Shown: positions 11,301 through 17,300 of the stretch, one piece after another | Numbering within the stretch: position 1 is the stretch's first letter | Layout of the letters: every line of letters begins with the position of its first letter | DNA from: Perkinsus chesapeaki ATCC PRA-425 | Taxonomy: Eukaryota > Protista > Perkinsozoa | NCBI GenBank assembly: GCA_013115145.1 | Contig: JAAPAO010000333.1 | Span: 1-38,511, forward strand | DNA: 38,511 bases | Direction of reading: 5' to 3' | Program-made: the position numbers and the translations under genes | The notes under the pieces: model-generated | The model's input: the letters and a program-made list of their open reading frames with translations, nothing else | What the model was told of the DNA's origin: nothing | Database searches by the model: none

Positions 11301-14300
11301 AACATGCTTTGTGTAGCAGTACCGTTCGGGAGCTGATATAGGGAGCTGTCGAACTCCGAAGTACCACCAGAAATAAACCTTCCGGCAGGGAAAACCGCTC
11401 TAGTTTGTAAAGAGCAGCTTAGTTCCATGTCCTTGCCTAGCTTACAATAGGAACATTCTTATGCTCCTTGGGGGAGTGACAACTTTGTCGAAGCATAGGT
11501 TACGATTCTGGCAATCTCCCAGTTTAGATAAGCTATGGTTTATCACCACTACATGCAGGTGCATTCCTTCTCCCGACAGTTCACAGGATGGCTCAAGAAG
11601 GGCCTCCGCCAACAGGTTGTTCTATAGACGGCCAATGCACTCATAATGGGGGCAGATGGAAGGCATATCCAGTCGCTTTGGTAGGGTTTGAGAGGTTCAC
11701 TCTTGTACTACTATCTTATTGCTCATTTGGGTCATTCGTGCTCAGTGGATTATTTTGGAATAAACGAATGGGTTATTTTGGAAGGTGTTAAGGTAGATGA
11801 AGTTATCTCAACAATGAACAATTTTCATTATGTGCATTACATCTGAATGCATATTCGAAATCTAATTGCGGAAGCAAATTTATATATTTCGAGTAACATA
11901 GCTATTACAGTACAGCTGCTTCCATAGTACTGTACTAGTACCTCGTGGTCCACAAGCTTGACTGCTAATAAGTGTACTATTAGTACATCCTAGAACTCTG
12001 CAGTATTCCCTAGTTGCACTTGTTATGACTGTCAGTTCATCAATATCAATGTTATCCTATTTGGAGGTTACGGACAATAGCTGTAGACTACAGCCTGTAG
12101 TCTCGTACTTGTGATTATGTGAGTATGTGATTACAGGATTAGAGGCGAAACTCGCACACCTGTGACTCAGAAAGATTCAATCTGTGCACAAGATATTCAA
12201 TCGTACAAATCTTAAAGATTCAATCTGTGCACAAGATATTCAATCGTACAAATCTTAAAGATTAAATCTTGCCAAGATTAGCCGAGACTCGGAGGAAGGC
12301 GACGCTCAAAAAGTGAATGCTGAAGGCCGTGGCCGGAGCAGTCGGCTCGCCGAGTTACGGGGCCGATTTCGGACGAGCAAGCGATAAAGGGAATTTTCAA
12401 CGACTGCAGAAAGCTCGTAGAGTGTCCTGACGATCGGGAATACATATATAACGGTGTTATCATAATGTTAAAGGCCTTTGTAGGGCTCCAGGACCTCAGG
12501 TTGTGTCGAGCAAGATGTAGGAAATCATACAGGAAATCATACATACTTATTTTTGGAGGATTAGCCTTCGCTAGACTCTAGCGGGTAGAGGGATTGTCGG
12601 GAGGCTGCTGACGCTCGACAAATTTGCGAGAAAAACAGTGTTATCATATATCTTATTTTCCACCTAGTTCCGGCGCATTCGTAGTTAATAGAGAGTCTAT
12701 AGGATTTAAATCTCGTTGTCAGGTATTGGCGCCGACTAGGGAGCTGGCATGTCAAATATTTGCAGAAGCACGCAAATTTTGCTTTGATACCGGTAGGACT
12801 TTCCCCGAAGACCGATTAGGGCTTCTGGATGAGCGAGCATCGATTCCGCGCTAGATGCATGCACTCGGGACTCCCAAGTTGGGACTGACTCCGCGTGAGG
12901 CAAAGCTAGCTTTAAGATATCAGGATTTTGTAGAATAGCTCCGAAGATTCTGTGAACCGGATTAAGTTTGAAACATGATTATATCATCAGAAAGTGCTTA
13001 GTTCAAGAGCGTTAACGAAGTTGATGATATGCATGAGGCTGAAGAGGAATTGTTTAAGTTAGAGTGAATAACGCGGTTCGGAAAGCAAAGCTGCCGTCGT
13101 GACTTAGCCGGAGTCCAGCTTAGCTGGTCGTGATGTGGCTGTCGTGACTTAGCTGGAGTCCAGCTTAGCTGGTCGTGATGTGGATGGAATTTTCATTCTT
13201 CAAGGTATCAGACCAGTCGTAGTATACGGTGGAGCCGAGATCAGGCTGCAGCTGCGGGAATTGGAGAGGGGATGCGATATGCTAGTTGCGACCCCAGGGA
13301 GGCTGACTGATCTCATTGAGAGGTGAGTCAGGTTGCGAGCGACGCTGAGGCGGTTCTCTGGATTTTCGTGAAGGTAAGGTCTGTTGACGTGAGGAGATTC
13401 ATTCTTAGAGGTGCGATCCACGCCATTGAGTTAGAATACTGGATGGTACGGTGCACTTGCCTAGTGGCTTGCCCAGTCTGATCCGGGATGTATGCCATAC
13501 ATTGCATGGTATTCCGAGATGTATTATCAATACCGTGACGTGTCACAAGATTTCCCGCGTCGGATTTGGAACCCTGAACGACACTGGCATTTTGTCGTTA
13601 GATATCGGGTATCATTGAGTGAAGTGAAATGTCTAATATTCGATGAGGCCGATCGTATGTTGGACATGGGCTTCGAGCCACAAATAAGACGAATAGTGGA
13701 ACAGGAAGATATGCCTTCATCGAGGCAAGGACGTCAAAGTAGCAAGGTTTGGGATCGATCGTTACACAGTGTAACTTTTACTATTGCTTCATGCCAAATA
13801 GCGATTCTACGTGGATACCAGAGTTTGCCTCTGCCGCATTATAGAATTTATACATTACGTATAAAGCTTCTCGTTGGCCACTGGCCAGGTAAGTAGGAAA
13901 TTACTCCAAATGACAGAGAAATTAGGAATCTCAATCAGCAGTACTGATGAGCGAAAATCCCAGTTATCAGAGAGAGTTCTTTTGGTGATGACTCTGTATT
14001 CATCAGGAAGCTGAAATTGCTTATCCTTTTATGTTCTTCTAAAATCGTCCGCTTTTGGCCATGAAGCCTGAGACTTTCGAGCATTTATTGCTTATTTGTC
14101 GGTCATATACTATAGGGCATATATTCATGCAGCTTCAATTGATATCGACTCCTTTTAGGTACCATGTTCTCGGCCACATTCCCGAAAGAGATCCAGCAGC
14201 TCGCACGGGACTTCCTGCACGATTATGTTTTTCTAACAGGTGAAAGTGATGCTACGTTGTGCCGGTCCGGCACTGCCGGATAGGCATAATTAATTTGCGT

Positions 14301-17300
14301 TATGCTCTGTAAAAGACGATCATTTGCGAGACCCTTGTATTGTCAATAATATACATGCTCTTCGTTGTCAGTTGGCCGTGTTGGCTCAACACATAATTCT
14401 ATTCGGCAAGTGGTGAGGTAAGCAGGACTGGCTGGGAGTCGTATCGATAACTATTCGCTGGAAATGTTAGTTGAAGTTGTCTTATCCGATAACATCTGCC
14501 TTAAAGTCTTTGTGTTTCTGTTCAGATATGTTGATGATCGGGACAAATACAAAGACTTGCGACGTATTTTAGAAGATCAGTCGGAGGAAGGACTCACTTT
14601 GGTAAGTGCACCTTAGCCAGTCCCAAGTACAGGTGTAGTTTCCGTGAATGATGTTCTTACATTTAAGAGGCCCAAGGGCACCAAAAGGGCTTCGAGGGCG
14701 ATAGACTCGGTGGTTCGTTCGAGGCGGGGGATTCGACGAAGCTCGTTGGTGTCTGCCCCTATGATACCTCACCGTTATCTTACGCCCCGCCTCAGTACTC
14801 CTCACATCCGATGCCTTGACATTCTCCGGCCTGTATAGGCTCTGCGTACCCCGTGGGGTCACACCAACATTGCTCTGGCCATACTCCCTAAGTGAAACTC
14901 AGTGTAATTTATTTGGGCTATCTCGCCAGGAAAAGTGCACATTGGCAAGCGGCTTCCCGCAAGCCTTGCCAGGCAAGGTGATTTGTGGGCCACGGTACGA
15001 CAAGATGGGCGCAATTGTCCGTGAAACTTTCACGGACAACGCGCGATTTTCACAGTGGAAACCTCAACTGTTTAAACTTAACATCATGTTCAAAAGAAGA
15101 TGACGAGAAACCGCTATCACTTTCATGGGGCTCCTATGTGGCCAGTAGACGAAACCCGGATCTGTCGCTGGTTTGGCAGTACCTTCGAAGACACACTTCA
15201 AAAGGCTATCATCACGCTTCTGTGCTCTATGGTGCTCGCGAGAGTGACATGTTACTTGAGAACCACTCTAGTAGACGTACTCTATGCTTCAGTGAAGATT
15301 GCATGGAGATTTGCACTGTTAGTCATAGACGAGGTGCAATTTTACAAGACGATTTGTTTGGTCGGATCTGCTCCCCTTCATGGTCACAATGAAGGAGAAC
15401 AGGTCAGATCAAACAAAGGAACCTACGGCTTGAAAATCTTCATATCAAAACTGGTTCCCAAGGACGTGGCCAACCTACAAGGATGGGGATATGCTACTTA
15501 TGCTGATGACATTATAGTTCATCCCGACGATGAGATCACTTGTCAGCGTAGCTGATCGCTTTTTCCAAGTAGATCATTAGTAGCCGCTTTCCGTACATTT
15601 TCACTTACCTCGAGTCGAGGTATGCCTTCCTTACTAGTGAACGCGTTACTTGGACAAGCAGGGAACTGAGTTCCCGGAACTCACCTGTATCACCCTATAT
15701 ACAAGGCTGATAACGAGTTCCTAGGTGAGTAAGATGATTAAGACTCTGATGCCAAAAGATATCAGCCTAGCGCGGCGTTCAAGGCACAGCACAGATGGCA
15801 TTTATGACTGTATTGTACGAAAGACTCAACTACGATTCTTAATTATGAATCAGCAGCACAGAGTTGGTTGAAAATGCTATTCATTTTTGTCCTGTTAGTA
15901 TCAGCAATAGGTCTATAAATAAAGCATCTGATTTTCGTCTTAGCACGAGCTCTTATTGCGTGGCATAATATGCTGATTAAGAGTGCGCTATGTTAGGCGC
16001 CTGATGCCTGGGCATGAATGATTCATTCAAAGGATGACTTAAACCGTTACTAGGATCTACTGCGACGAGATACCCAGACGTCTTCGTTGGTCGAACATTA
16101 GGCATCACTTGTCATCTGAATAGAGTGCGTGGATCCTATGTCGAGATCCTCGACATCGCAGATAATAGTAGATAATTCCCGGTTTTAGCTGGCGATCGAT
16201 CTAGCATGGGGAAGTTCGAGAACGCTAATGGATTGTAACCCAACACCTGGCCGTCAACTTGACGGCGTCAAGATTTGTCTCTAACCTTGACACCCAGTAG
16301 ATATGAGCCGTGCTCATGTACTGGAATGTAAGCCGAACTTGCGGATGCATTCAGTTTCTGCCAAAAACCTTCTGATGTTTGTTAACAGTCTATGTATAAC
16401 AGTTAGCATGTGGCAGCTACACCCACTGAAAAACTACACTGCTTGGGGGGTTTGTACTCGAAGGCTTTGCGAGCCTGGGTTTATGATTCCGTTCGGAGCA
16501 GCTCTTTCAACTGAAAACCTCGGGGACAATTGCCCAGTGCGAGCTGCTCAGGCCATGTGACTCTGCAGGTATTTGTAGAGACGAAACGACGTGCCGATGA
16601 GTTGGAGCATATGCTGTGTCGAGACAGGTAACGCGCTAGCTGGTAATTCAGCTGACATCTCTCTTATAGGTATCCTGCTACGTCGATTCATGGCGATCGC
16701 AGTCAGATGGAAAGGGAAGAGGCCTTGAGGGATTTTAAACTAGTAAGCCTCTTCTTGCGTAAAGGGCCTGTTTTACTTCTGAACGACCTGAGGTTCAGTT
16801 GCCTTCAGCTCCAGTATATTCCGGTAATGTTGAGCGTAAGCGATATACTTGAATTTTCGGTCTAGAATGCATAAAGGGATGTACCTCCTCGGAGGCGGTC
16901 GAGCCTGTTTGGCCCCCTTGACGAGTCCGCCGCCTACAGCGCTTATACTACTTGCTTGTGACTGTATGTTGTTTTTCGTATTTAATCAGGGAATGCGTCC
17001 GATACTCGTAGCAACTGATGTGGCAGCTCGAGGGTTGGATATAAGTCATGTGAACCATGTTATCAATTACGACTTGCCGCATAACATTGATGATTACGTC
17101 CACCGTATAGGAAGTGAGTCCCCTGAATTACTGCAGCTAGTAGCTTCGGAGCCGCCTTTCAGGGACGGGCCGTGTTGGGAATCTCGGTACTGCCACTTCA
17201 TTCGTCAATGAAAATGGTCGGCCGATCCTGCGAGATCTCTGGGTAGGCAGCATAGGCTTAAAGAGTTACATAGTGTTTAGATAAATTAGAAATATTTTGT

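Follow-up and report, generated by a model that had tools for sequence, protein, structure and literature searches.

The non-coding DNA of the clam parasite Perkinsus chesapeaki, an alveolate, carries at high density a 22-nt structure of fixed geometry, made of two overlapping palindromes, which we interpret as the likely donor-site repair scar of a hAT-type cut-and-paste DNA transposon. The window, by which we mean the whole stretch of DNA analyzed, is the entire 38.5-kb contig JAAPAO010000333.1 from the draft assembly GCA_013115145.1, and includes a 100-N gap. We found 56 scar loci across this contig, or about one for every 0.4-0.7 kb of non-coding sequence, with the densest groups at 24.4-26.0, 19.3-20.0, 12-16.3, and 6-7 kb. 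An original prediction had named five sites in introns of a gene for a DDX3/Ded1-type DEAD-box helicase (10326-18338, forward strand), and had explained them as a target-site duplication (TSD), an inverted TSD, and a TSD left behind by hairpin excision of the hAT type. All five sites are present where it placed them, and each expectation of the excision model that can be tested at the sequence level holds. Its restriction of the structure to DDX3 introns was too narrow, as scars also occur in other introns and in intergenic DNA.

Geometry and abundance of the 22-nt scars

Each scar can be written as x-D-y'-rc(D)-x'-D-y, where D is a hexamer, rc(D) is its reverse complement, and the central bases y' and x' complement the outer bases y and x, respectively. 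The hexamers are unrelated in sequence from one scar to another, and the geometry is common to all. We compared the counts of such 22-mers in the whole window to the mean of 100 dinucleotide-preserving shuffles. Perfect 22-mers, in which 14 of 14 pairs are intact, were observed 11 times against a mean of 0.00. Beyond these there were 43 imperfect 22-mers with one to three broken pairs: 9 with 13/14 pairs (0.00 in shuffles), 14 with 12/14 (0.11), and 20 with 11/14 (1.6). The enrichment over chance put forward in the original prediction is therefore real, and the abundance of the structure had been understated.

The same exclusivity was seen when the component palindromes were considered on their own. 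Perfect palindromes with a spacer of 1 nt and arms of exactly 7 nt numbered 43 against 1.8 expected, while palindromes with spacers of 0, 2, and 4 were at or close to background (for the even-centered, spacer-0 class, 4 versus 1.6 with 7-nt arms and 1 versus 0.5 with 8-nt arms). The distance between neighboring centers peaks sharply at 7 nt (12 pairs), with 8 nt in 3 pairs, which is where a single mechanism had been proposed to place the peak. When the chained design was scanned for duplications of 5 to 12 bp, the perfect counts were 0, 0, 0, 11, 0, 0, 0, and 0, respectively, so that only 8 bp is represented. Likewise, a scan for x-D-y'-Z-x'-D-y with inserts Z of 0-20 nt found Z=6 alone to be common (14 versus ~0.6 expected). 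The complement rule is obeyed at both centers in 11 of 12 perfect D-rc(D)-D triplets, compared to 1/16 by chance. Because both central bases complement the outer bases, the unit that has been rewritten is 8 bp long, and not 6. A Transib/RAG-type footprint was considered and rejected: a 5-bp duplication gives zero perfect chained structures, and even-centered palindromes are not enriched.

Four of the five originally named DDX3 sites have the full double-palindrome geometry, as perfect 22-mers with 14/14 pairs. These are gCTGTAGaCTACAGcCTGTAGt at 12080-12101 (inferred target GCTGTAGT, with both complement rules obeyed), gTGCCGGtCCGGCAcTGCCGGa at 14259-14280, which lies 15 nt downstream of the end of a DDX3 exon (with GTGCCGGA as the inferred target), gGGAACTgAGTTCCcGGAACTc at 15661-15682, and cCGTCAAcTTGACGgCGTCAAg at 16251-16272, which corresponds to the site first given as 16250-16272. 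The fifth, at 13151-13172, departs from this geometry by one extra base, and is a variant with arms of 7 and 6 nt and centers 8 nt apart. Outside DDX3, perfect scars were found at 6877-6898, in the intergenic DNA between DDX3 and an AlkB-like gene (19334-19355), in an intron of the AlkB-like gene (19952-19973), and, in the densest cluster at 24.4-26.0 kb, at 24769-24790, 24938-24959, 25887-25908, and 25951-25972.

Decayed scars in DDX3 introns include those at 12569-12590 (13/14, through a single substitution in the third arm), 13488-13509 (13/14), and 13761-13782 (12/14). Two overlapping decayed scars, each 12/14 and offset by 13 nt, at 14944-14978 resemble a scar within a scar. Two weaker sites had also been suggested earlier. 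The first, 12867-12884, belongs to a decayed 22-mer at 12864-12885 (12/14), whereas the second, at 11925-11937, is a lone palindrome with 6-nt arms.

A DDX3 intron contains a tandem duplication of a 45-bp unit (13093-13182), and the variant scar at 13151-13172 lies in its second copy. Copy 1 has the same structure with a C/T difference, and the two copies differ at two sites, each being GCCG in one copy and GCTG in the other. As both copies hold the variant scar, the scar must be older than the duplication. In another variant, at 24848, the parts are likewise separated by one extra base.

Some palindromes are associated with other tandem repeats. At 12171-12279, a 43-bp unit is present as an exact tandem duplicate; it starts with AAAGATT and ends with AAATCTT, which creates odd-centered palindromes at the copy junctions. 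This duplication is followed by three chained palindromes (centers at 12257, 12264, and 12272), and the triplet at 12250 violates the complement rule. A 33-bp tandem array at 19475-19790, broken by the 100-N gap, contains the palindrome gttactaTtagtaac in each unit and has at its end a perfect palindrome whose arms are 19 nt long (19744-19782).

Exon avoidance, decay, and the P. marinus locus

Between 10326 and 21287, where conserved exons make up 23.4% of the stretch, 0 of 24 scar loci touch a conserved exon (P=0.0017). Across the 22-mers, broken pairs form a graded series, which indicates ongoing accumulation followed by decay through point mutation. The scars are neutral in introns and intergenic DNA and are unrelated to DDX3 function.

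For comparison we used the syntenic locus of Perkinsus marinus (L001; 20.5 kb, assembly GCA_000006405.1), in which the order of the DDX3 and AlkB-like genes is kept. It contains one perfect 22-mer and two to five decayed ones (two of them at 12/14), a density roughly six-fold below that in P. chesapeaki. The perfect scar, gTCTATTcAATAGAcTCTATTg at L001:7405-7426, lies in the orthologous DDX3 gene region; elsewhere in the locus, such palindromes are almost absent. When the two loci were aligned, exons aligned and introns did not. The scar-forming process is present in both species, with scars about six-fold denser at this P. chesapeaki locus. Two scar-carrying introns of DDX3 are three to four times longer than in P. 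marinus: the intron at 13331-13599 has 268 nt versus 76 nt (L001:3590-3666), and the intron at 14244-14365 has 121 nt versus 41 nt (L001:4828-4869). Other introns are shorter in P. chesapeaki, and there is no simple trend.

These observations bear on two other explanations. Given that the assembly is a draft, with a run of Ns in this contig, the palindromes might have arisen by sequencing, amplification, or assembly error. We regard this as very improbable, since such errors would have had to spare exons, to yield a graded series of point-mutation decay, to be copied in one case by a later tandem duplication whose copies have since diverged, and to recur in the separate P. marinus assembly. 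The other explanation, offered as an alternative in the original prediction, is that the structures act in the DDX3 pre-mRNA as RNA switches between mutually exclusive hairpins. Each 22-mer does have two alternative folds, and several are close to splice sites. However, the structures are also found in intergenic DNA and in other genes, their sequences are unrelated, and they decay without compensatory change. In P. marinus, the orthologous introns cannot be aligned, and the 20.5-kb locus has about six-fold fewer scars. We therefore set the switch aside as having next to no likelihood. Taken together, the exon avoidance, the decay series, the copied scar, and the P. marinus scars speak against an artefactual origin as well as against a conserved function as RNA hairpins.

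Proposed hairpin excision from a duplicated target

Insertion of hAT elements duplicates 8 bp of target (PMC10368747), and their excision proceeds via hairpins on the flanking DNA (PMC5499845). The 22-mer architecture, the exclusivity of 8 bp and odd centers, the complement rule, the rare variants, the avoidance of exons, and the decay can all be seen directly in the DNA, and from them we infer a course of insertion, hairpin formation, distal opening, and annealing. An element inserting at a target t1..t8 would duplicate these 8 bp. On excision, the transposase would nick one base into each flank, and the 3'-OH of the flank would attack the opposite strand to form one hairpin per flank, with the complement of the target base adjoining the element at its tip. 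Zhou et al. 2004 is said to place the first Hermes nick one base into the flank. With c denoting the complement, the left hairpin would unfold to t1-t7, c(t8), c(t7)..c(t1), and the right hairpin, in top-strand sense, to c(t8)..c(t2), c(t1), t2-t8. Opening of these hairpins by the host at a distance from the tip, for which an Mre11-type cut is one possibility, would release a left 3' tail, c(t8)..c(t1), and a right 3' tail, t1..t8. The tails, being complementary over 8 nt, could anneal, to be followed by fill-in and ligation. The product would always be t1-t7 + c(t8)..c(t1) + t2-t8, which is 22 bp long and 14 bp longer than the original 8-bp site. Since the annealed product would be the same whatever the position of the nick, this course would account for the uniformity of the scars. 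In Perkinsus, both the Mre11-type opening and the microhomology joining are postulates.

The inferred targets provide a line of evidence that is independent of geometry. We considered 34 inferred targets on both strands, giving 68 cases. T at t2 (or A at t7) was found in 28/68 (41%) versus a background of 27.6% (p=0.011). G at t1 (or C at t8) was enriched (24/68, p=0.011), and T at t1 (or A at t8) was depleted (7/68, or 10%, p=0.0005). Pooling all 63 palindromes gave the same trend. Hermes and hobo prefer targets of the form nTnnnnAn (PMC10368747, PMC2803484), and the Hermes sites given in PMC2803484 mostly have GT or AT at the start and AC or AT at the end. The scar targets appear to lean toward nTnnnnAn as well, a signal that is weak but significant and that matches the Hermes/hobo preference. 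Judged from sequence, then, the scars display what would be expected of a hAT footprint, namely, a basis in an 8-bp duplication, odd centers that complement the element-adjacent target base, and targets resembling nTnnnnAn.

Several rarer structures can be placed within this excision course. At 31347-31382, two abutting odd-centered palindromes span 36 nt, with arms of 9 and 8 nt (TAAGTTCAA-A-TTGAACTTA followed by TATTGAAC-T-GTTCAATA), and share one target, AGTTCAAT. The left center, A, complements t8 of this target, and the right center, T, complements t1, as would be expected had both hairpin arms been kept and joined without annealing. A variant at 19392-19422 has a left arm of 5 palindromic bases, followed by a short filler and, on the right, a complete palindrome, with TTTCAAAG as the target on both sides. 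Lone odd-centered palindromes occur with 8-nt arms (15606-15622) and with 12-nt arms (15015-15039). Those with arms of 9-19 nt, such as the latter and the one at 19744-19782, fit one-sided long hairpin products.

There are also indications of compound events. At 24411-24451, three unrelated odd-centered palindromes with arms of 9, 7, and 6 nt overlap one another by 3 nt (CGC, GCG) and have no common target; these may be joins of hairpins from different sites, for example, through alternative transposition or deletion. At 6279-6323, the hexamer core CTTCAG/CTGAAG occurs five times in 45 nt, as a decayed 22-mer and then a palindrome with 9-nt arms and the same core, which hints that the triplicated target of a scar drew a second event. 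An extra copy of the core was found within 45 nt of 6/34 scars versus ~1.3 expected, and two of these six stem from a tandem duplication. That scars beget further scars is only suggestive.

A transposon-free origin would be repair at random breaks, through template switching during replication, fold-back priming, or templated insertion by polymerase theta. Such processes do make short inverted and direct templated repeats, and no element was found locally. Their arm lengths and spacings vary, however, while here a spacing of 7, arms of 7, odd centers, and the complement rule recur. Furthermore, the base preference at t1, t2, t7, and t8 suggests an enzyme that selects its sites. Both hairpins also contain the same 6-8 bases. 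It follows from this architecture that the 8-bp site was already present in two copies when the break occurred, and cutting of a single-copy site by a nuclease could not yield the product. This explanation is accordingly quite improbable.

A somewhat larger, though still small, likelihood attaches to another superfamily with 8-bp duplications (MULE, P, Merlin, Zisupton, or Novosib), or to a domesticated hAT-like nuclease acting in a hit-and-run manner. The window yielded no hAT gene or element, and the MULE element Muta1 has duplications of 8-9 bp and also forms flank hairpins. A sub-threshold SWIM match is present in the open reading frame (ORF) at 6366-6626 on the reverse strand. This ORF, with a CxC...CxH motif, scores 18.8 bits against the SWIM zinc-finger model versus a Pfam cut-off of 19.6 bits, and sits in a scar-rich stretch; a host exon and the relic of a transposase are both possible identities. 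Against a MULE, the Muta1 flank hairpin (43+43 nt) has no offset and would give even-centered palindromes, which are not enriched here. P elements make long staggered cuts and are not known to form a hairpin. The target logo, moreover, fits hAT.

Several results weigh against excision of a hAT-type element as the source of the scars. No hAT transposase domain was detected by Pfam in the 128 window ORFs of at least 70 amino acids. A scan of the window for inverted ends matching at 10 of 12 positions revealed no terminal inverted repeat element with an 8-bp duplication, but low-complexity or chance matches only. At constant copy number, each jump leaves one scar, so that a few mobile copies could produce many scars, and 38.5 kb free of elements is only weak counter-evidence. 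No empty site was obtainable from the P. marinus locus, as the introns cannot be aligned, and self-BLAST of the window revealed no dispersed repeats that might have supplied an internal one. In the 43- and 45-bp tandem duplications the structure is present in both copies, and neither is empty. The AlkB-like protein is recorded on one contig only, giving no second copy of the locus, and a metagenome scan with a 29-mer from an exon-intron junction yielded no match.

The scar spectrum itself raises further difficulties. The classical +8 footprint (Z=0) is absent from the insert scan of the window, as are other short hAT footprints of +8 bp or less, and this absence requires a host repair pathway that is hypothetical in Perkinsus. 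Of the 63 palindromes, 27 are isolated and have to be explained separately, for instance by one-sided resection or alternative transposition. The complement rule has a lone exception in the triplet at 12250, which derives from the 43-bp tandem duplication, and the target logo is weak at n=34.

Genomic setting, implications, and related systems

The DDX3 host gene, which serves here as context only, is intron-rich, with at least 16 conserved exon blocks. PF00270 (DEAD) and PF00271 (Helicase_C) are recorded for its 728-amino-acid product, and Pfam places both on exon ORFs. One piece of exon has matches to DBP2 and DDX3X with E-values near 1e-15. By these matches the gene is classed as a DDX3/Ded1 DEAD-box helicase, whose closest solved relatives would be DDX3X, Dbp2, and Vasa. 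Downstream lies the gene for the AlkB-like dioxygenase. Across the 128 window ORFs, the only Pfam matches were DEAD, Helicase_C, 2OG-FeII_Oxy_2, zf-UBR, DUF4381, and the sub-threshold SWIM. ORFs at 14.8-15.6 kb that resemble reverse transcriptase gave no such match in Pfam, and their frame shifts do not fall at scar positions. The contig starts with a satellite-like 10-bp repeat, AATGACTAAT (1-150), and its end is also satellite-like (37938-38237 and 38342-38495), where a 50-bp repeat is accompanied by an AT-rich tandem repeat with a 22-bp unit.

What is new here is a near-uniform +14-bp outcome, fixed at a density of about one scar for every 0.4-0.7 kb of non-coding sequence; the chemistry is already known. 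A full-text search of the literature turned up no publication on such scars or palindromes in Perkinsus. With slightly less than even confidence, we propose that Perkinsus repairs hAT hairpin breaks nearly always by one route, in which the hairpins are opened distally and the 8-nt tails that stem from the target duplication then anneal. Were this the case, each excision would leave an identical, self-identifying +14-bp scar, and the scars would constitute a countable and datable fossil record of cut-and-paste transposition. Were this contig typical, there would have been, very roughly, 10^5 events genome-wide. A triplicated preferred target could also seed new insertions and measurably lengthen the introns and spacers of P. 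chesapeaki compared to those of P. marinus.

Cut-and-paste transposons usually leave scant trace, and their past activity is normally judged from surviving copies. A uniform 22-bp mark would make transposition flux, target choice, local hopping, and, via decay, timing accessible from one genome. It points to unusual processing of hairpin-capped breaks in an alveolate parasite, which is relevant to genome editing in Perkinsus and to the growth of its introns and spacers. For annotation, it accounts for widespread short palindromes that might otherwise be mistaken for regulatory hairpins.

The scars share features with several known systems. Template-switch and polymerase-theta insertions also leave short templated repeats, inverted or direct, where repair took place, but lack a fixed geometry, a complement rule, or a target logo. 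The MULE Muta1 likewise forms flank hairpins and duplicates 8-9 bp, yet its hairpin is symmetric (43+43 nt), and most of its excisions in yeast are precise. The P nucleotides of V(D)J coding joints are similar in that a hairpin-sealed flank is opened off-center and leaves palindromic bases. However, the RAG hairpin has no one-base offset and no target duplication, and Artemis opens it within a few bases of the tip; lacking the offset, distal opening, and target duplication, V(D)J joining gives no triplet structure. Hermes is closer, with its 8-bp duplication, nTnnnnAn preference, and flank hairpin, although neither a transposase nor an element of the Hermes type was identified in the window, and the preference is weaker in the scars.

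The excision footprints of Ac/Ds in Saccharomyces cerevisiae and Arabidopsis are similar to the scars in having palindromes centered on the complement base, long arms, and microhomology. In these footprints, palindromic additions are centered on the complement of the transposon-adjacent base, and in yeast their arms reach 20 nt and microhomology is seen in 88-89% of joins (PMC5873905). Ac/Ds-type footprints are nevertheless heterogeneous and mostly short, with 28 types among 128 events in Candida. In Perkinsus, by contrast, a single +14-bp product (TSD, inverted core, TSD) makes up about three quarters of the recognizable events.

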